From the IMG/VR virus record IMGVR_UViG_3300049855_000348, positions 1 to 64,000 of that record: a stretch of DNA of 64,000 nt. One strand, written 5' to 3'. Both the position numbers and the translations under genes were made by a program. Position 1 is the first letter of the stretch, and each line of letters starts with the position of its first letter. The notes below the pieces were generated by a model, which did not search any database, was not told where the DNA came from, and was given only the letters and a program-made list of their open reading frames with translations. Shown piece by piece: positions 18,491 to 40,769 of the stretch.

Positions 18491-18565
18491 CGTCGAGTAT
18501 TTCAGCGGAAGAATATCTGCATGACATGCAGAAGGTCGGTGGTTCGATCCCACCCTCGACGACCA
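18491..18565 (+). tRNA. tRNA-Val(GAC)
   Basis: Cloverleaf, loop ATGACAT, encoded CCA. Confidence 0.9.
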
Positions 18566-18570
18566 AACAA

Positions 18571-18648
18571 TGCGGAGTAACTGGAGATGGAACCAGCCCA
18601 GCCTCATAAGCTGAACAAACGTGTGTTCGAGTCACACCTCCGCAACCA
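18571..18648 (+). tRNA. tRNA-Met(CAT); Met versus Ile2 not resolvable
   Basis: Cloverleaf, loop CTCATAA, CCA. Confidence 0.88.
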
Positions 18649-18649
18649 T

Positions 18650-18839
18650 TTGCAAGGACCTCTCTGCCCACCATCTCGATCCTAAGAAGAAAGAAGACAA
18701 CATCGGTACGATGGTCAGAAGAAGAGTGGCTATCAAAACTTTGGAAATCGAACTGCAAAAGTGTCTCTGCGTGTGTGAGAACTGTCATCGCAAGATCCAT
18801 GCAGGTATCATCAAACCTTTTCTCAGTGCTGGATCATGA
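18650..18839 (+). pseudogene. Truncated HNH endonuclease remnant
   Basis: HHLDP.KK...KC.CVCENCHRKIH begins right after the tRNA CCA with no start context. Confidence 0.65.
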
Positions 18840-18886
18840 CCGAACGCCTGTGGTCATTCCCTGGCGGGCACTCGGATTCTTCACAT

Positions 18887-18963
18887 GGTGGTCGTAGCTC
18901 AATGGATAGAGCACTGGACTGTGGCTCCAGCGGCTGTGGGTTCGACTCCCATCGATCACACCA
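18887..18963 (+). tRNA. tRNA-His(GTG)
   Basis: Cloverleaf, loop CTGTGGC, G-1 present, A73. Confidence 0.92.
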
Positions 18964-18970
18964 GTTCATT

Positions 18971-19047
18971 GTGCGGAGTACGCGCCTGACCCAGGCAAGA
19001 GGGTTTGCTCTAACCTCCCAGAGAAGAACGGGAGGTTGCTTCGGCAT
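18971..19047 (+). ncRNA. Putative structured spacer RNA (three hairpins in a closing stem)
   Basis: GCCTG/CAGGC, AGAG/CTCT, AACCTCCC/GGGAGGTT. Confidence 0.4.
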
Positions 19048-19121
19048 GGCTTGGTCGCTCAACGGCAGGGCGCTGGTTTGAAAAACCAGAGACGAAGGTT
19101 CGACTCCTTCTCAAGCCACCA
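19048..19121 (+). tRNA. tRNA-Phe(GAA)
   Basis: Cloverleaf, loop TTGAAAA. Confidence 0.92.
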
Positions 19122-19133
19122 TCTCCTTCTCAC

Positions 19134-19211
19134 GGTCGGTTCACTGCATGGTGCAGTGTGCGCAAGGACAGTCCCCTAAGCACGGCGGTTCGATTCCCCG
19201 GCTGACCACCA
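19134..19211 (+). ncRNA. tRNA-like RNA with no canonical anticodon loop
   Basis: GGTCGGT/GCTGACC-A-CCA, TTCGATT loop, GC-GCAA-GG..CC-CCTAA-GC in place of the anticodon arm. Confidence 0.7.
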
Positions 19212-19221
19212 TTTTTTTCAT

Positions 19222-19294
19222 CGGCTGGAATAGGTGCGCGTAAGGCATCAGATCCCCTCAAGCGATGGAGGTTCGATTCCTCCCTGGCCGACCA
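19222..19294 (+). ncRNA. tRNA-like RNA lacking a D-arm
   Basis: CGGCTGG/CTGGCCG-A-CCA, perfect GGAGG-TTCGATT-CCTCC, module GC-GTAA-GG..CC-CCTCAA-GC. Confidence 0.7.
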
Positions 19295-19296
19295 AG

Positions 19297-19402
19297 TACG
19301 ACTTCTCGGGTTCCGCAAGGAACGATCGTCCTACTGGCTACAACGGTGAAAATCCGGTGGATGCCAGAGGTGGTGGGATGGCTCACCAAATAAACTGAGA
19401 CT
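19297..19402 (+). ncRNA. Structured RNA A (paralog of RNA B)
   Basis: ACGAC start, CTCGG/CTGAG closing stem, GCAA tetraloop, AATAAA before the closing strand. Confidence 0.55.
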
Positions 19403-19407
19403 CATAA

Positions 19408-19484
19408 GCACCGATCGGCTGGTGGAAAAGCTACCTCCCTTTCAAGGAGATTCTTCGCGGGTTCGACTCCCGTTCGGTGTACCA
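19408..19484 (+). tRNA. tRNA-Glu(TTC)
   Basis: Cloverleaf, loop CTTTCAA. Confidence 0.88.
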
Positions 19485-19590
19485 ACGACGGAGCACAGTG
19501 ATCGAAAGATCGACCGGCTAGGCAACTCGCAAGAGTGCTCGAAAGGGCGGAGTCTAGTGGGGTGTAAGCACCTCGAATAAACTGTGAGTT
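19485..19590 (+). ncRNA. Structured RNA B (paralog of RNA A)
   Basis: ACGAC start, CACAG/CTGTG closing stem, GAAA and GCAA tetraloops, AATAAA. Confidence 0.55.
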
Positions 19591-19592
19591 AT

Positions 19593-19666
19593 GGTCCTTT
19601 CTGTCAGTGGCAGGCAGCCTGATTCTCAGTCAGACAACGTCGGTTCGATTCCGACAAGGACTACCA
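19593..19666 (+). tRNA. tRNA-Glu(CTC)
   Basis: Cloverleaf, loop TTCTCAG. Confidence 0.88.
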
Positions 19667-19669
19667 GCA

Positions 19670-19767
19670 AGAGCGGGACACTGGTTCGAGGCCAGTCATC
19701 GCAAGATGTAGCTCAGGGTGAAAACGTAAGGCATCAAACCCCCAAGTAATCCGGAAGAGCACGCTCT
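19670..19767 (+). ncRNA. Permuted (T-AS-D order) tRNA mimic with inserted module
   Basis: AGAGCG/CGCTCT closing; CTGG-TTCGAGG-CCAG; CATC-GCAA-GATG; TA-GCTC...GAGC. Confidence 0.55.
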
Positions 19768-19771
19768 ATTT

Positions 19772-19849
19772 GTTCCTGAGGACTAACGGCTAGGTCACCT
19801 CCCTGTCACGGAGTCATTCAAGTGGGTTCAACTCCCATCAGGAACGCCA
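19772..19849 (+). tRNA. tRNA-Asp(GTC)
   Basis: Cloverleaf, loop CTGTCAC, G73. Confidence 0.9.
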
Positions 19850-19853
19850 ACAT

Positions 19854-19927
19854 CCACGCTTCGTCTAATGGCAGGGCACCGATCTGATACGTCGGATACC
19901 AAGGTTCGATTCCTTGAGCGTGGACCA
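19854..19927 (+). tRNA. tRNA-Ile(GAT)
   Basis: Cloverleaf, loop CTGATAC. Confidence 0.88.
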
Positions 19928-19941
19928 CTTCAGTTTCACAT

Positions 19942-20016
19942 TGTGGGATGGCCTATGTGGTAGGGCACCCGGTTGTTACCCGGACTATACTGGTTCGACT
20001 CCAGTTCCCACAGCCA
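19942..20016 (+). tRNA. tRNA-Asn(GTT)
   Basis: Cloverleaf, loop TTGTTAC. Confidence 0.92.
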
Positions 20017-20021
20017 CTTTT

Positions 20022-20097
20022 GGGGTCGTAGCTCAATTGGCAGAGCACCTGTTTTGCACGCAGGATGTTAGCGGTTCAAGTCCGCTCGATTCCACCA
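20022..20097 (+). tRNA. tRNA-Ala(TGC)
   Basis: Cloverleaf, G3:U70. Confidence 0.95.
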
Positions 20098-20167
20098 CGC
20101 GGGAGTAATCTGAGAAATCAGAGAGAATTACCAGCCTCACAGCCGGCAAGGAGTAGACTGTGGTTTT

Positions 20168-20243
20168 GGGGAGTTAGCTCATCTGGTAGAGCGCGAGCAT
20201 GGCATGTTCGAGGCGAGGAGTTCAAGTCTCCTACTCTCCACCA
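20168..20243 (+). tRNA. tRNA-Ala(GGC)
   Basis: Cloverleaf, G3:U70. Confidence 0.92.
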
Positions 20244-20256
20244 CTTTCAATCATAC

Positions 20257-20340
20257 GGGCGGCGATATCTCAGAAGCGTAAGGATGATCCCCCAAGTTAT
20301 GAGAAAATCCTATGGGGTGAAAGCCCTCAACTGTCCACCA
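20257..20340 (+). ncRNA. tRNA-like RNA with an Ala-type acceptor (G3:U70, A73, CCA) and a TGAAAGC T-loop
   Basis: GGGCGG/CTGTCC-A-CCA; TGGGG-TGAAAGC-CCTCA; module GC-GTAA-GG..CC-CCCAA-GT. Confidence 0.6.
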
Positions 20341-20342
20341 CT

Positions 20343-20432
20343 CGATCGGAACGTCAGTCGCAGCGTAAGGCTTTTATCAAATCCCCAAGCTGTGCAGTAA
20401 CGCAACTGCTGGTGAAAGACCAGCCTGATCAC
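20343..20432 (+). ncRNA. tRNA-like RNA with a TGAAAGA T-loop and no encoded CCA
   Basis: GATCGG/CTGATC; GCTGG-TGAAAGA-CCAGC; module GCAGC-GTAA-GG..CC-CCAA-GCTGT. Confidence 0.55.
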
Positions 20433-20440
20433 TCTTCAAA

Positions 20441-20523
20441 CGAAACCCTGGCGGTGAAAAACCGCTTCCTCGGCGCATCCCCTACGTTGGTCTACCTCTG
20501 AAGTTTATCGACCCAGGGCTTCG
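20441..20523 (+). ncRNA. Structured RNA with a T-loop-like first hairpin
   Basis: CGAAACCCTGG/CCAGGGCTTCG closing; GCGG-TGAAAAA-CCGC. Confidence 0.45.
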
Positions 20524-20602
20524 TGTTTCTGCTAGCTAGATTCATGGGTACCATCAGCGACATCGACGATCAACTCTACGTTCAGCACATCAAGTAACGC
20601 AT

Positions 20603-20677
20603 ACGTCGATAGCTCCAATGTAGAGCGACGGTTTCCAAAACCGTTGGTTGGGGGTTCAAGTCCCTCTCGACGTGCCA
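20603..20677 (+). tRNA. tRNA-Trp(CCA)
   Basis: Cloverleaf, loop TTCCAAA. Confidence 0.92.
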
Positions 20678-20682
20678 TTCAC

Positions 20683-20757
20683 TGAGAGATAGTTCAACGG
20701 TAGAACGCTGCCCTCTGGAGGCAGATGCTAGAGGTTCGAGTCCTCTTCTCTCAACCA
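20683..20757 (+). tRNA. tRNA-Gln(CTG)
   Basis: Cloverleaf. Confidence 0.95.
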
Positions 20758-20760
20758 CAC

Positions 20761-20835
20761 TCAGGAATAGTTCAACGGTAGAACGCTGACCTTTGGAGTC
20801 AGTTGCTCCAGGTTCGAGTCCTGGTTCCTGAACCA
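20761..20835 (+). tRNA. tRNA-Gln(TTG)
   Basis: Cloverleaf. Confidence 0.95.
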
Positions 20836-20843
20836 TTTCACAT

Positions 20844-20922
20844 CTGCGTGTAGCTCAGCCTGGAACAGAGCACTTGCCTTGGGAGCAAGGGGTCGGAGGT
20901 TCAAATCCTCTCACGTAGACCA
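20844..20922 (+). tRNA. tRNA-Pro(TGG)
   Basis: Cloverleaf, loop CTTGGGA. Confidence 0.92.
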
Positions 20923-20927
20923 TTCAT

Positions 20928-21009
20928 GACGGTCGAGTCGAAAGTCGGGCGCTCCGGCATCAGATTGCAACCCTGATGACAGGTGGTTGAACTCCACCGA
21001 TCGTCTCCA
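20928..21009 (+). tRNA. tRNA-Cys(GCA) with an enlarged D-arm
   Basis: Loop TTGCAAC, U73, D region about 8 nt longer than normal. Confidence 0.8.
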
Positions 21010-21014
21010 TTCAC

Positions 21015-21090
21015 GTGTGTGTATCTCAGTGGCTAGAGAGCTTCCTTGCCAAGGAAGAGGTCGCAGGTTCAAGTCCTGTCACACACTCCA
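21015..21090 (+). tRNA. tRNA-Gly(GCC)
   Basis: Cloverleaf, U73. Confidence 0.95.
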
Positions 21091-21093
21091 ACA

Positions 21094-21160
21094 GGGGCAA
21101 ATGCGGGTTCAACTCCCGCTGCGACTTCGGTCGTATCGTCTAACCCGGTAGGACGGCCCC
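21094..21160 (+). ncRNA. Circularly permuted tRNA fold (YrlA/Y-RNA-like T-AS-D order); structure may extend to about 21280
   Basis: GGGGC-AAAT-GCGGG-TTCAACT-CCCGC-TGCGAC-TTCG-GTCGTA-TC-GTCT-AACCCGGT-AGGAC-G-GCCCC. Confidence 0.75.
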
Positions 21161-21282
21161 ACCCCGTGCGGATTGGATACCCGCACGGAATCCGAAGTCC
21201 TCAGGTTCAAGCCAAGGCAACCGCTCGCCGAGCGGAATACAAAATGCGGCTAGAGCAGGGGAGCACGAACGTGGCCCCGTTT

Positions 21283-21356
21283 GCCGATGTAGGTCAATGG
21301 TAGATCTGCTGCCTTCCAAGCAGAGGACGCGGGTTCGATTCCCGCCATCGGCTCCA
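21283..21356 (+). tRNA. tRNA-Gly(TCC)
   Basis: Cloverleaf, U73. Confidence 0.92.
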
Positions 21357-21360
21357 TCAT

Positions 21361-21436
21361 GTGTGCCTAGCTCAATGGATAGAGCATCTGACTACGGATC
21401 AGAAGGTTGAAGGTTCGAGTCCTTCGGTACACGCCA
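21361..21436 (+). tRNA. tRNA-Arg(ACG)
   Basis: Cloverleaf. Confidence 0.95.
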
Positions 21437-21469
21437 TTGCATAGCGATCTTTTTGGCTAGCATGTAACC

Positions 21470-21997
21470 ATGTCACTCAAAGATGCCCTCTTTCACTTTC
21501 GTGATCTTGGTTACTACGTTGATGATCAAGGAAATGTATTCAACCCAAGAGGAAAGATTCTTCGGTGTTCAACAAACAAAGATGGTTACAAAAGAATTAC
21601 CACAAGAATGAGAAATCATCCAGTTCATGGGGATTGGTGCCCTAAGGTTGAGGTTCACCGTCTTGCCGGTTATCAGAAGTTCGGAGACAAAATCTTCACC
21701 GAAGGACTTGAGATCTGTCACGATGATGGCGATAAGCGAAACAACGCCAAAGACAATCTGCGACTCGATACGCACAAAAGTAATATGATGGATGTTCCTC
21801 AAGAGGTAAGGATCAATAGAGCAAGACGTGCTGGTAGAGAACATGCCAAGCTAACAGATGAGCAGGTTGCTCACATTCGTTCATCTGGCATGACTCTGAA
21901 ACAGATCATGCAAACATACGGTATCAGTAAGTCTGGTGCCTCCTACGTCAGATCAGGAAAGACTTACGCCAGCCCGTGTATCCCCTCGCTTTCCTAA
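21470..21997 (+). mobile_element. HNH homing endonuclease inserted in the tRNA array
   Basis: VHRL...ICHDDGDKRNN..DNL, C-terminal HTH-like segment; AT-richer than its flanks. Confidence 0.85.
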
Positions 21998-22051
21998 AGC
22001 GGTGAAAGGGTAACTGGACACATGCAGGTTCAAATCCTGCCTCGGGTACCA
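21972..22051 (+). tRNA. Non-canonical rewired tRNA-Arg(CCT)-like, 80 nt
   Basis: Acceptor stem, T-arm and CCA; anticodon arm TCGCT-TTCCTAA-AGCGG nested inside CCC/GGG; AACTGG lies 3' of it. Confidence 0.7.
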
Positions 22052-22054
22052 CAT

Positions 22055-22132
22055 CGGGGTCCTAGTACGGGAGTGTCTGCATACCATTCGGTCACTACAG
22101 CCTCGGCGGTTCAATCCCGCCAACCTCGACCA
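22055..22132 (+). ncRNA. tRNA-like RNA lacking a D-arm (G3:U70, A73, CCA)
   Basis: CGGGGT/ACCTCG; GGCGG-TTCAATC-CCGCC; single long bulged arm ending in loop TCTGCATAC. Confidence 0.6.
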
Positions 22133-22135
22133 CAT

Positions 22136-22211
22136 GCGATCGTATTTCAATTGGAAGAACACCACCCTCCGAAGGTGGAAGGTGCAGGTTCGAGTCCTGC
22201 CGATCGCGCCA
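22136..22211 (+). tRNA. tRNA-Arg(CCG)
   Basis: Cloverleaf. Confidence 0.92.
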
Positions 22212-22214
22212 TCT

Positions 22215-22290
22215 GGTGACGTAGCTCAATGGACAGAGCTTCCAGCTTCTACCTGGATGGTTGGAGGTTCGAGTCCTCCCGTCATCGCCA
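22215..22290 (+). tRNA. tRNA-Arg(TCT)
   Basis: Cloverleaf. Confidence 0.95.
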
Positions 22291-22294
22291 TCAT

Positions 22295-22369
22295 GCTGCC
22301 ATAGCCGAGTGGTAAGGCACTTCATTCGTAACGAAGAGACCGGGTGTTCGATTCACCCTGGCAGCACCA
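22295..22369 (+). tRNA. tRNA-Thr(CGT)
   Basis: Cloverleaf. Confidence 0.9.
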
Positions 22370-22373
22370 TCAC

Positions 22374-22449
22374 GCCCCCATAGCTCAGTTGGTAGAGCAA
22401 CAGTTTTGTAAACTGTAGGTCGTCGGTTCGATCCCGACTGGTGGCTCCA
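22374..22449 (+). tRNA. tRNA-Thr(TGT)
   Basis: Cloverleaf. Confidence 0.93.
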
Positions 22450-22456
22450 TTTTCAC

Positions 22457-22530
22457 GCTGCTATAGTTCAGTGGTAAAACACGTCCTTGGTAAGGACGAG
22501 CCCCAGGTTCAATTCCTGGTAGCAGCACCA
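22457..22530 (+). tRNA. tRNA-Thr(GGT)
   Basis: Cloverleaf. Confidence 0.93.
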
Positions 22531-22535
22531 TTCAT

Positions 22536-22611
22536 CCATCAGTAGCGTAATTGGCAGCGCAGCGGGTTTTTACCCCGTGGGTTGTGAGTTCGACTCTCAC
22601 CTGATGGACCA
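22536..22611 (+). tRNA. tRNA-Lys(TTT)
   Basis: Cloverleaf. Confidence 0.92.
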
Positions 22612-22617
22612 TCGCAT

Positions 22618-22693
22618 GCATCCATAGCTCAACTGGCAGAGCACTCGGTTCTTACCCAAGGGGTTGGAGGTTCAAATCCTCCTGGATGCACCA
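22618..22693 (+). tRNA. tRNA-Lys(CTT)
   Basis: Cloverleaf. Confidence 0.92.
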
Positions 22694-22707
22694 TCATTAC
22701 ATAAGTC

Positions 22708-22941
22708 ATGCCAGCATGGAAATGGATGATCCTGAAGTTCTGTACCAGAGCGCATTTCATGCGGCTCATAGCAACCTTGATCATCCTCATCGCAGGCTTT
22801 CAATCTCTCTACTACCAGAAGATTGAAGACACGTGGTTGATCCTGGTTGGTGCAGTGATGAACCACTACTTCAACCACAAAGAAGCTGCGAACGTCACGG
22901 AAGAAGACAAGAATCCGGACGACGAATGCAAGGTCGGTTAG
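22708..22941 (+). CDS. Small two-TM membrane protein embedded in the tRNA array
   Basis: Two hydrophobic segments and an acidic tail; the stop codon lies inside tRNA-Val. Confidence 0.55.
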   Translation: MPAWKWMILKFCTRAHFMRLIATLIILIAGFQSLYYQKIEDTWLILVGAVMNHYFNHKEAANVTEEDKNPDDECKVG

Positions 22942-23006
22942 TTCAGCGGTAGAACGCTTCTCTTACACGGAAGATGTCGGGGGTTCGATCCCCTCACCGA
23001 CTACCA
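22932..23006 (+). tRNA. tRNA-Val(TAC)
   Basis: Cloverleaf. Confidence 0.93.
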
Positions 23007-23011
23007 CTTGC

Positions 23012-23091
23012 CGGTCTGTATCGGCTCGGTCTTATAAGCCGTCGAAACCGTAATTGGTTACATGAGGGTTCGACTCCCTCCAGACCGACCA
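23012..23091 (+). tRNA. Non-canonical rewired tRNA-Ile(TAT)-like, 80 nt
   Basis: Same segment lengths as 21972-22051; loop CTTATAA; CGG/CCG covaries with CCC/GGG. Confidence 0.75.
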
Positions 23092-23126: not shown

Positions 23127-23678
23127 ATGGCACCCGGTGCCTGCATAGTGCTGAACAACTCGTATGCCTTCCTCTCGATCAACAACTGGTTCGAGGCGAT
23201 GCGTCTCGTCGTCCGTGGCCGCGCCGTGCCGCTGGCAAACTACGAGACCAAGATCCGGGCAGAGCGTGAAGAGTTCGACGCACCAGCAGTCGTGATGCTG
23301 AAGCACCACGTGAACCTGGGGCGGAGAAGGCAACCTTTCACCCTGCCATCACATCGCAACATCTGGGTCCGTGATGGTGGGCACTGCGCCTACTGCAATC
23401 ACCCGCTGACGCTGCGGACAGTGACCAAGGAACACGTGATGCCCAGGTCACGCGGTGGAGAAGACAGCCTCTTGAACGTCGTGTCCGCCTGTGGCGACTG
23501 CAACGCCAAGAAGTCGAACCGCACGCCGGCAGAAGCCGGCATGAAGTTCCGTGACGGCATCGAACTGCGTCACCTCAACGATGAGGAGAAGCTGACGGTG
23601 CTGCTCAAGACCTCCCAGAGCCACGAACGGAAGACGTGGCTGGGGTTCCTCAAGAAGCAGGGTCTGACGCTGTTCTGA
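23127..23678 (+). CDS. HNH endonuclease (McrA-like)
   Basis: VLNNSY, RNIWVRDGGHCAYC, T.EHV.PRSRGG, NVV.AC..CN.KK.NRTP; SD AAGGAG. Confidence 0.88.
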   Translation: MAPGACIVLNNSYAFLSINNWFEAMRLVVRGRAVPLANYETKIRAEREEFDAPAVVMLKHHVNLGRRRQPFTLPSHRNIWVRDGGHCAYCNHPLTLRTVTKEHVMPRSRGGEDSLLNVVSACGDCNAKKSNRTPAEAGMKFRDGIELRHLNDEEKLTVLLKTSQSHERKTWLGFLKKQGLTLF

Positions 23679-39878: not shown

Positions 39879-39967
39879 TGGCGGAAGTGGCACGAATCGA
39901 ACGTGCAAGACCCGTGAAGGTCTGTTGAGGTTCAAGCTCAGTCCCCTCGCCTATAGGGAGCACTTCC
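39879..39967 (-). tRNA. tRNA-Ser(TGA)
   Basis: Long variable arm, G73, CCA. Confidence 0.9.
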
Positions 39968-39972
39968 ATGAA

Positions 39973-40064
39973 TGGCGGATACGGCAGGATTTGAACCTGC
40001 GGGTGACTTGCGCCACCTCCTAGTTTCGAGCTAGGTGCGATAAGCCGGGCTCTGCCACGTATCC
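39973..40064 (-). tRNA. tRNA-Ser(CGA)
   Basis: Long variable arm, G73. Confidence 0.92.
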
Positions 40065-40069
40065 ATGAA

Positions 40070-40162
40070 TGGCGGATTGCTAGGGAGTCGGACCCTCAAC
40101 GTGTTTCCACGTTTCATCGCTTTCCAGGCGAGTACGGTTAGCCACCACCGTCAACACAATCC
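40070..40162 (-). tRNA. tRNA-Ser(GGA)
   Basis: Long variable arm, G73. Confidence 0.88.
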
Positions 40163-40167
40163 ATGAA

Positions 40168-40259
40168 TGGCGGAACGGGTGAGATTTGAACTCACGGGTG
40201 ACTTTCGCCACCTCTTCCTTAGCAAGGAAGTGCAATAGGCCAGACTCTGCCACCGTTCC
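40168..40259 (-). tRNA. tRNA-Ser(GCT)
   Basis: Long variable arm, G73. Confidence 0.93.
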
Positions 40260-40263
40260 ATGA

Positions 40264-40347
40264 TGGTCTCTGAGGTGGGACTCGAACCCACAAAGCTGCG
40301 ATGTTTAGGACCGCAAGGTGTGCCATTCCCTATGAAGCCACTCAGAG
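40264..40347 (-). tRNA. Atypical tRNA-Leu(TAA)-like
   Basis: GCGGT-CCTAAAC-ATCGC (C33), expanded D region, short variable loop. Confidence 0.65.
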
Positions 40348-40351
40348 AAGT

Positions 40352-40429
40352 TGGTGTCCCATGCAGGAGTCGAACCTGCAAAGATCTGCATTTTGAATGC
40401 AGCGCGTCTGCCAATTGCGCCAATGGGAC
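40352..40429 (-). tRNA. tRNA-Leu(CAA), short variable loop
   Basis: Cloverleaf, A73. Confidence 0.9.
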
Positions 40430-40430
40430 G

Positions 40431-40507
40431 TGGTATCCACGAAGAGATTTGAACTCTTACTGTTCGGTGCCTAAGACCGATGCCTCTGCCGGTTGGGCTA
40501 CGTGGAC
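40431..40507 (-). tRNA. tRNA-Leu(TAG), short variable loop
   Basis: Cloverleaf, A73. Confidence 0.9.
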
Positions 40508-40513
40508 GTGAAA

Positions 40514-40599
40514 TGGTGGGATAGGCTGGAGTCGAACCAACAGTGGCGGTGAAGCGTCACGTTTACAGCGTGGTGAGCCTTCCAATGCTCAACTATCCC
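40514..40599 (-). tRNA. tRNA-Tyr(GTA)
   Basis: Long variable arm, loop CTGTAAA. Confidence 0.9.
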
Positions 40600-40609
40600 A
40601 GATGAAAAA

Positions 40610-40688
40610 TGGTACCCGTGACAGGAGTCGAACCTGCAATTTTACTACCACCTCAAGGTAGCGCGTCTGCCAATTTCGCCACACGGGC
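40610..40688 (-). tRNA. tRNA-Leu(GAG), short variable loop
   Basis: Cloverleaf, A73. Confidence 0.9.
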
Positions 40689-40691
40689 ATG

Positions 40692-40769
40692 TGGTACCGG
40701 GGGCGGGAGTCGAACCCGCAAAGAACATGGACCTGAACCATGCGCGTCTGCCTGTTTCGCCACCCCGGC
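40692..40769 (-). tRNA. tRNA-Leu(CAG), short variable loop
   Basis: Cloverleaf, A73. Confidence 0.9.

Follow-up and report, generated by a model that had tools for sequence, protein, structure and literature searches.

Two probable phage tRNA genes, for arginine and isoleucine, with half of the D arm relocated 3′ of the anticodon arm

The DNA analyzed here, called the window throughout, is the first 64 kb (64,000 nucleotides [nt]) of the 220,489-bp viral contig IMGVR_UViG_3300049855_000348, and window and contig coordinates coincide. The contig comes from a freshwater sediment metagenome, and the window has a G+C content of 55% and codes for a DnaE-type polymerase, helicases, and HNH endonucleases. 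ARAGORN called 33 transfer RNAs (tRNAs) in two arrays, at 18491-23006 on the + strand and at 39879-40769 on the − strand. Rfam confirmed 31 of the 33, the exceptions being a tRNA-Met at 18571-18648 and a tRNA-Ser at 39879-39967, and added one tRNA at 19772-19846 that ARAGORN had missed. Our subject is a pair of further elements, E1 (21972-22051, +) and E2 (23012-23091, +), which lie inside the + strand array and have the same strand and spacing as its 25 canonical tRNAs; at the tRNA 3′ ends read in this array (22136-23006), we found an encoded CCA and spacing of a few bases. Two HNH homing-endonuclease open reading frames (ORFs), at 21470-21997 (+) and 23127-23678 (+), flank E1 and E2. The stop codon of the first, TAA, falls within the anticodon loop of E1, so this ORF overlaps the E1 gene by 26 nt.

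An earlier note on this DNA had described E1 and E2 as two 80-nt tRNAs, Arg-CCT and Ile-TAT, that match each other segment for segment. A position-for-position alignment of 21972-22051 and 23012-23091 bore out the coordinates and the match, and the anticodon loops, UUCCUAA in E1 (anticodon CCU) and CUUAUAA in E2 (UAU), agree with the proposed isotypes. In both elements, a 7-nt acceptor strand is followed by UA, U, CNN, C, and an anticodon arm with a stem strand of 5 nt, a loop of 7, and a second strand of 5; then come NGAAA, NNG, U, AAYUGG-NN-A, CAU, a T arm of the same 5, 7, and 5 nt, the second 7-nt acceptor strand, A, and CCA. In the window, the 54-nt degenerate motif common to the two is found exactly these two times; the expectation from 100 shuffles is 0.00. 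Each element has a 7-bp acceptor stem (in E1 with one U.U and one G.U), a T arm containing GGUUCRANYCC, U33, A37, a discriminator A, and an encoded CCA. The anticodon arm drawn as 5-7-5 in the earlier note is present, but its first stem pair (27:43) is mostly mismatched, as U.G in E1 and U.U in E2; the nested stem proved to be a real helix, of 3 bp plus a flanking U.U.

E1 comprises 77 nt plus the encoded CCA. Its acceptor 5′ strand (21972-21978) pairs with 22041-22047 and is followed by U8-A9 (21979-21980), which correspond to invariant columns (T8, A9) in the family of homologs described below. The next segment, U-CCC-C (21981-21985), is the equivalent of the 3′ strand of a D stem (22-25) plus nt 26, and it leads directly into the anticodon arm (21986-22002), with the anticodon at 21993-21995. 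A linker, UGAAA (22003-22007), combines the equivalents of nt 44-45 with an AAA connector and belongs to the NGAAA that is near-invariant in the family. GGG-U (22008-22011), equivalent to the 5′ strand of the D stem (10-13), comes only at this point, its GGG pairing with the CCC at 21982-21984, and it is followed by a relocated D-loop, AACUGGACA (22012-22020), that holds the equivalents of A14, A15, G18, G19, A20, and A21, of which A20 agrees with arginine identity. CAU (22021-22023) stands for nt 46-48, its U able to pair with A15 as a Levitt pair, and the gene closes with the T arm GCAGG-UUCAAAU-CCUGC (22024-22040) and a 3′ segment (22041-22051) made up of the acceptor strand, the discriminator A (22048), and CCA (22049-22051). 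E2, also 77 nt plus the encoded CCA, repeats this plan, with U-CGG-C (23021-23025) as the equivalent of 22-26, the anticodon arm at 23026-23042 (anticodon at 23033-23035), the linker CGAAA (23043-23047), CCG-U (23048-23051) as the equivalent of 10-13, the CCG pairing with the CGG at 23022-23024, and the relocated D-loop AAUUGGUUA with CAU (23052-23063), in which the position-20 equivalent is U, as in Ile tRNAs. Its T arm, GAGGG-UUCGACU-CCCUC, the acceptor 3′ strand, the discriminator A, and CCA occupy 23064-23091.

Standard detectors handle both elements poorly. ARAGORN calls neither, and with the Rfam tRNA model RF00005 (gathering threshold, 29 bits) E1 scores 28.0 bits, below threshold, and E2, when searched by itself, 31.5 bits, above it. 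RF00005 aligns to both from end to end, but it does so only by reducing the D arm from 15 positions to 4 and placing an 18-nt insert in the variable region; the other three arms are thus those of an ordinary tRNA, unlike the region where a D arm is expected. Between A9 and the anticodon stem, where a cloverleaf would have its D-arm hairpin (nt 9 to 26), there is nothing but U-CNN-C. E2 is not a selenocysteine tRNA (tRNA-Sec) by the model RF01852, scoring 26.6 bits against a threshold of 47, with a 7/5 geometry instead of 8/5 or 9/4 and the anticodon UAU instead of UCA, and it reaches only 12.2 bits against a threshold of 40 with RF00233, the model of the tymovirus tRNA-like structure (TLS). 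Single-sequence folding z-scores were weak (−0.85 for E1 and −2.73 for E2).

We scanned IMG/VR with an 18-base motif, GTAAYTGGNNACATGNNGGTTC, leaving the anticodon and the bases after the GG free; BLAST with the 77-nt E1 or E2 is too insensitive. Matches were found in at least 116 contigs, and among the matches listed, 108 of 117 (the window's two included) had the full 77-nt architecture with at least 6 of 7 acceptor pairs, representing 74 distinct sequences. A covariance model, R1, was built on 55 distinct homologs. The covariance-model search that the earlier note had proposed as a check yielded more than 100 homologs at 75-95 bits, with canonical tRNAs below 30 bits; E1 scores 86.5 bits and E2 91.6 bits. 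R1 gave 85-87 bits to two members on which it had not been trained, one of Streptomyces phage Jay2Jay and one of Kehishuvirus tikkala, which is crAss-like. Over 98 loci, R1 gave 110 matches, with two or three in 11 of the loci.

The nested helix enclosing the anticodon arm was examined in two alignments, A1 (55 distinct sequences) and A2 (88 distinct rows), the latter derived from R1 and therefore leaning toward the nested structure, because it was fitted to the model. The compensatory change between CCC:GGG and CGG:CCG that had been noticed in the pair turned out to be real and general. The nested helix (columns 11-13 with 37-39) is paired in 100% of A1 and 98.8% of A2, and all three pairs covary across homologs: column pair 12:38 of A1 is C-G in 26 sequences, U-A in 18, G-C in 8, and A-U in 3, while 13:37 is C-G in 45 and G-C in 7; in A2, the otherwise constant C-G pair also varies (A-U in 8, U-A in 2, G-C in 1). 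CG, UA, GC, and AU pairs occur at all three positions. Compensatory changes are present in four helices. The acceptor helix is 96-97% paired with all seven pairs covarying, and the T helix, which in E1 and E2 closes a loop with U54-U55-C56 and A58, is 98-99% paired (A1, A2). Conserved covariation among homologs, on which the earlier note had made its reading depend, was thus found in both alignments. The structure as a whole is 93.3% paired in A1, compared with 38-50% in controls with slid partners (37-50% over both alignments), and RNAalifold, given A1 alone, predicted the same nested helix. The minimum free energy fold of E2 from ViennaRNA, an extended anticodon helix with an AACCG-UAAU-UGGUU hairpin, was considered and rejected; this hairpin is 46% paired, with no covariation in the family.

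The relocated loop was then compared with a D-loop. All member anticodons belong to isoleucine (UAU, GAU, CAU) or arginine (UCU, CCU, ACG, UCG, GCG), and the base after the GG follows this division: it is A in 17 of 17 and then 27 of 27 Arg members, and U in 49 of 49 and then 56 of 58 Ile members. Canonical ARAGORN-called tRNAs of the same contigs show the same preference (A in 79/85 Arg, U in 22/26 Ile). A20 is the classical identity determinant of arginyl-tRNA synthetase (ArgRS). All Ile members of the first set have A as discriminator, and in E1 and E2 the position-20 equivalent agrees with the anticodon. U33 is invariant and A37 is present in at least 90% of the family. Bases of the tertiary contacts of tRNA (U8, A14, R15:Y48, G18, G19, A21) are all found at equivalent positions, the contacts themselves being predicted. 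A divergent Ile(GAU) subfamily, B, of six distinct sequences, has the order acceptor-UA-ACC-NN-anticodon arm-AC-NNA-GGU-AR..GG..-Y-T arm. In it, the second loop base and the base before the T stem are A..U in four sequences and G..C in two, an alternation that is the pattern of the R15:Y48 Levitt pair. One further variant (L145:4806) also has G..C at the 15:48 equivalents, and another with an extra hairpin (L139:13235) is a possible exception. The suggestion of the earlier note that AAYTGG resembles a D-loop placed 3′ of the anticodon arm is thus upheld by the position-20 equivalent, which tracks isotype, and by the 15:48 covariation.

We also moved columns 37-49 (NNG-U-AAYUGGNNA), read as nt 10-21, in silico to a place between columns 9 and 10. 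ARAGORN called 0 of 66 sequences in native order and 66 of 66 after the block had been moved back, as tRNA-Ile, tRNA-Arg, or tRNA-Met(CAU), with the anticodons expected. Controls gave 0/66 calls with a shift of +3, 5/66 with the block reversed, and 41/66 with a shift of −3.

Unrelated phages from marine, freshwater, soil, and gut habitats carry homologs. They also occur in cultured phages, among them about 77 of the Jay2Jay/Samisti12 group on Streptomyces, Kehishuvirus tikkala, the crAss-like phage cr130_1, and about 24 Vibrio phages, several of which are recorded as isolated on V. crassostreae. The elements lie at 75237-75313 in Jay2Jay (NC_029098), at about 95577-95653 in Kehishuvirus tikkala (OQ198717), and at about 129971-130054 in Vibrio phage 184E37.3a (MW824372). 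Variants include a linker lengthened to 12 nt in Vibrio phages and an extra small hairpin before the T stem in locus L139, and all variants are Ile or Arg. When close relatives of the window's own phage were sought, its upstream helicase, used as a query, retrieved only its own contig. Among 50,697 phage records, a search for stretches nearly identical to the region yielded trivial matches only. A motif scan of one genome per species (185,579 bacterial and archaeal species) returned only 18 loci, nearly all in contigs of metagenome-assembled genomes (MAGs). In three of the five of these contigs that were scanned (L125, L132, L135), 15-20 tRNAs lie within 8 kb, which points to mis-binned phage DNA. 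The sole isolate copy, in Mesorhizobium sp. Root552, sits among small unannotated ORFs 1.5 kb from a tRNA-Gln; its neighborhood had no PHROGs match and Pfam gave housekeeping neighbors only, and the copy could belong to an integrated element. We therefore regard the class as essentially phage-borne.

Annotation has largely passed these genes over. In about 110 deposited phage genomes, nothing, or only “hypothetical protein,” is annotated under nearly all matches listed, and the Kehishuvirus element exactly fills an unannotated gap between tRNA-Trp and tRNA-Met. The sole annotated exception is the “tRNA-Phe(gaa)” of Mildred21 (L147 245-320, equal to MF155946.1 91367-91442), which covers a member exactly. 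The true loop of this member is CUUCGAA (UCG, Arg) with an A20 equivalent, ARAGORN makes no tRNA-Phe call there, and the annotation has forced a rearranged tRNA-Arg(UCG) into a shifted cloverleaf. In Mildred21, too, an HNH gene lies directly upstream of the rearranged tRNA. The class of phage tRNAs to which E1 and E2 belong, confined to isoleucine and arginine and with half of the D arm relocated, is widespread and has remained almost entirely unannotated. As annotation misses or mis-calls the genes, AUA and AGR decoders are systematically underrepresented in inventories of phage tRNAs and in analyses of codon compensation.

The canonical tRNAs of the window read arginine with ACG, CCG, and UCU and isoleucine with GAU, so that the two anticodons lacking from these sets, CCU and UAU, are precisely those of E1 and E2. 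As the earlier note had supposed, the matching codons are rare, AGG making up 5.1% of Arg codons and ATA 4.0% of Ile codons in the phage's own genes; E1 and E2 thus complete a nearly full set, for which demand here is small. The ATA that the note had pointed out in the + leader has no bearing on the question. A canonical tRNA with the member's own anticodon lies in the same fetched locus for only 8 of 110 family members. On the contigs of the marine variant that is most abundant, a canonical Arg(UCU) is the one other tRNA, which leaves the rearranged Ile(UAU) as the only AUA reader there. In a tree built with the anticodon and position 20 masked, Arg and Ile members cluster (7 changes, compared with 22.5 when shuffled), and well-supported branches force at least two Arg/Ile identity switches, although the tree, of 72 columns, is weakly resolved. 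The family seems to descend from a single permutation event or a few, with later switches between Ile and Arg anticodons.

Taken together, conservation, covariation, and genomic setting lead us to consider E1 and E2 probably genuine phage genes for tRNA-Arg(CCU) and tRNA-Ile(UAU), members of a rearranged-core family whose variable loop has taken up nt 10-21. The order is 1-9, 22-45, AAA, 10-21, 46-76, and can be described as a circular permutation within the tRNA, of the module 10-45. In canonical numbering, the first part reads 1-7, U8, A9, then U22 C23 N24 N25, C26, 27-43, N44 G45, and AAA, and the second part N10 N11 G12 U13, then A14 A15 Y16 U17 G18 G19 N20 N A21, C A U48, and 49-76. The D stem (3 bp plus U.U) still forms, now around the anticodon arm, and would stack on the anticodon stem as in a normal tRNA. 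The relocated loop could then place A14, R15, G18-G19, N20, and A21 within reach of U8, Y48, and the T loop, so that the L-shape and the contacts to synthetases (A20 for ArgRS; A73 and the anticodon for isoleucyl-tRNA synthetase [IleRS]) would be retained.

The geometry of such a permuted core looks plausible when the known fold is used as a guide. In the core of yeast tRNA-Phe, U8 is stacked beside the 13:22 layer, nt 43 beside nt 10, and A21 beside the 8:14 and 15:48 layers. From the first of these it follows that 9 to 22 is a short step, from the second that a short A-rich linker can bridge from the anticodon stem to nt 10, and from the third that the path from 21 through 46-48 to 49 is short. 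The aminoacyl-tRNA synthetases, EF-Tu, and ribosome of E. coli accept a D-arm-less tRNA from the start (PMC11551756). We suppose that the E1 and E2 RNAs would be cut from the array transcript like their neighbors, charged by host ArgRS or IleRS, and used to read AGG or AUA, filling otherwise canonical Arg and Ile sets. Such genes might have arisen by a tandem duplication of the 10-45 module followed by loss of the outer copies.

Several observations weigh against this interpretation. The three-dimensional claim has conservation and covariation as its basis. The outermost anticodon-stem pair is usually mismatched (42/55 in A1 and 71/88 in A2), so the anticodon stem is effectively one of 4 bp. 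Bases of the tertiary contacts cannot covary in the core family because they are mostly invariant, some having been fixed by the search pattern; the 15:48 covariation involves few sequences, and the two G..C cases of subfamily B possibly have one origin. ARAGORN tolerates poor D arms, as the −3 shift control, still called in 41/66, indicates. AGG and ATA account for only 28 and 30 of 11,881 phage codons. Finally, the sole metatranscriptome with this phage, of a kind whose libraries may contain DNA, has exact contigs over 21476-21665, 22188-22376, and 23284-23400, and among the matches listed, none covers E1 or E2, although such contigs cannot show absence.

The alternative that survives best is that E1 and E2 are D-arm-less tRNAs of the mitochondrial kind, flexible molecules whose anticodon helix is extended and whose long connector has no structure, so that AAYUGG is undocked and the L-shape is approximated through flexibility. 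The Rfam alignment, with its deleted D arm and long variable insert, speaks for this, and a D-arm-less tRNA is usable by bacterial machinery (PMC11551756). However, the supposed connector is among the most conserved parts of the family, keeping the equivalents of A14, R15, G18G19, and A21; its position-20 base tracks amino-acid identity as in canonical tRNAs; the 15:48 equivalents covary; and the GG is retained together with a canonical GGUUCRANYCC T arm. For these reasons, we think this explanation improbable.

Alternatively, the elements could be tRNA-like decoys or regulators, acting as a sponge for host tRNA-targeting nucleases or as signals for array processing or recombination, uncharged and off the ribosome. 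An eLife 2023 article (PMC10264068) describes phage tRNAs as interacting with host anti-tRNA defenses, HNH homing endonuclease genes flank E1 and E2, and the codons AGG and ATA are rare in the phage. A decoy would nonetheless have to account for the preservation of the acceptor stem, discriminator, CCA, U33, A37, and A20 determinant, and for anticodons that fill gaps in the canonical sets without duplication. The restriction to two isotypes, with matching identity elements, is expected from selection for aminoacylation, which argues against this possibility, and we judge it decidedly improbable.

Un-permutation results might also be read as a sign of permuted genes whose transcripts are cut and re-joined into an ordinary cloverleaf, by analogy with the red alga Cyanidioschyzon merolae, given that moving the block back in silico yields an ordinary tRNA in 66/66 cases. 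Because both ends are already in place, however, such processing would need excision and re-insertion of an internal block, with two cuts and several ligations. We know of no mechanism for excising and re-inserting an internal tRNA block, and the tRNA splicing endonuclease is, to our knowledge, absent from bacteria. No bulge-helix-bulge-like motifs were seen, and the junction linkers, NGAAA and CAU, are strongly conserved, as expected of parts of a mature RNA. A cut-and-re-joined product is thus highly improbable, and the mature rearranged RNA is most likely colinear with its gene. That E1 and E2 are decaying pseudogenes or chance tRNA-like debris in a crowded array is barely conceivable: standard detectors do reject them and the same arrays hold other odd tRNA-like pieces, but more than 100 homologs in unrelated phages have the same layout, the motif is present twice against 0.00 expected, and the covariation refutes the idea.

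If the reading of E1 and E2 as rearranged-core tRNA genes is carried further, they might be the first natural non-cloverleaf elongator tRNAs of bacterial cytoplasmic translation, phage-specific topological isomers that rebuild the L-shaped core. Phages would keep them because the changed connectivity lets them go unseen by, or withstand, some factor directed at ordinary tRNA-Ile and tRNA-Arg, for example anti-phage tRNA nucleases or tRNA quality control on the host side, or phage nucleases that clear host tRNAs. We offer this fuller version as a speculation and consider it unlikely as a whole.

Other odd tRNA-like elements are present in the same arrays. A third tRNA-like gene, E3 (22055-22132, +), occupies the interval between E1 and tRNA-Arg(CCG) and was missed by both ARAGORN and Rfam. 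CGGGGUC and AACCUCG form its acceptor stem of seven positions, among them one C.A and one G.U; the T arm is canonical, and A73 and CCA are present. Its middle consists of a long hairpin with interruptions, in which UAGU..ACUA encloses GAGUG-UCUGCAUAC-CAUUC; the loop has 9 nt, and a D-loop-like GG segment is absent. We considered E3 as a third member of the family and rejected it, as R1 matches only its T arm (9.5 bits) and Rfam finds nothing; in our search, its hairpin recurs only in its own contig. Cysteine is the only amino acid without a tRNA here, and E3 might be a Cys(GCA) reader, although A73 argues against identity for cysteinyl-tRNA synthetase. The Rfam hit at 19772-19846 (42.9 bits) belongs to a tRNA-Asp(GUC) at 19770-19849 (+), with an unusual D arm, G73, and CCA, that ARAGORN misses. 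At about 40071-40163 (−) is a probable class II tRNA-Ser(GGA), read by eye and missed by both programs, with the loop CUGGAAA, a variable arm ACGUG/CACGU, G73, CCA, and an atypical T loop, UCCGACU. Two elements, at 19222-19294 (+) and 40264-40347 (−), combine A73 and CCA with acceptor stems that pair perfectly and T arms of canonical type, but we found no cloverleaf fold for their middles; in the second, a 9-nt-loop hairpin (UCCUAAACA) resembles E3. The motif CGTAAGGCATCARAYCCCC is present twice, within the first of these elements (19241-19264, +) and just upstream of tRNA-Asp (19724-19746, +). An isolated T-arm-like hairpin, GCGGG-UUCAACU-CCCGC (21103-21119, +), lies in a 190-nt gap between two tRNA-Gly genes (21091-21282) and has weak partial matches to transfer-messenger RNA (tmRNA) and YrlA models (16-27 bits, well below thresholds).

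Unusual tRNAs accompany family members on other contigs as well. Two contigs carrying rearranged tRNAs also have CUA-anticodon tRNAs called by ARAGORN (L071 8246-8319 and L139 1848-1919), labeled tRNA-Pyl (pyrrolysine), that is, amber suppressors, and stop codons may be recoded in those phages. A tRNA-like gene of 70 nt with the anticodon CAU and a reduced D region, which ARAGORN misses, recurs in several viral contigs (L139 12581-12650, L144 5026-5095, and L145 7465-7534).

If charging and decoding hold true, the family would be a natural and widespread counter-example showing that the tRNA core tolerates internal circular permutation while synthetase identity elements are kept. It would bear on how the tRNA fold is specified and on orthogonal tRNA design, as well as on how tRNA shape is read by RNase P, CCA enzymes, modification enzymes, ArgRS and IleRS, EF-Tu, and the ribosome. 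Several carriers are cultured, which makes direct testing possible. The earlier note had not recognized the architecture among described tRNA classes, and the literature searched agrees: we found no published description of such tRNAs in the full-text literature, a body that leaves most subscription journals outside its coverage, and a 2020 review of natural non-canonical tRNAs contains no permuted or viral class (PMC7609411).

E1 and E2 share with canonical class I tRNA-Ile and tRNA-Arg (RF00005) the 7-bp acceptor stem, discriminator, CCA, 5-bp T stem, and GGUUCRANYCC, as well as the 7-nt anticodon loop, U33, A37, U8-A9, the GG loop, the isotype-specific position 20, and location in phage arrays; they differ in that the D-stem 5′ strand and the D-loop lie 3′ of the anticodon arm, which breaks the connectivity of the cloverleaf. 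Like the permuted genes of Cyanidioschyzon merolae, they encode tRNA parts in a non-standard order. In C. merolae, however, the 3′ half precedes the 5′ half and processing restores a normal mature tRNA, whereas here the ends are normal, with the acceptor strands at the gene ends and a 3′ CCA, and an internal module is permuted. With the mitochondrial tRNAs (mt-tRNAs) that lack a D arm, such as mammalian mt-tRNA-Ser(AGY) and nematode mt-tRNA-Ser, they have in common the absence of a hairpin between the acceptor and anticodon stems and a non-cloverleaf form that can serve translation. Those mt-tRNAs have lost the D-loop, usually together with the G18G19 and T-loop motifs, and are flexible (PMC7609411), whereas the family described here, which belongs to a bacterial translation setting, keeps the sequence of a D-loop with its GG, a helix of the D type, and a T loop of canonical form, only reordered. 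The tymovirus TLS (RF00233), itself viral, and the tRNA-like domain of tmRNA likewise mimic tRNA through other chain connectivity, but they are parts of long RNAs with a pseudoknotted acceptor or no anticodon arm, not free adaptors. Finally, allo-tRNAs, tRNA-Sec, and tRNA-Pyl (PMC7609411) are, like E1 and E2, natural non-standard tRNAs that have often come to light through metagenomes and been overlooked or misassigned by detectors; their stems differ in length (8/4, 9/3, 9/4, or a 6-bp D stem), but they keep the order of the arms, which in E1 and E2 is what has changed.

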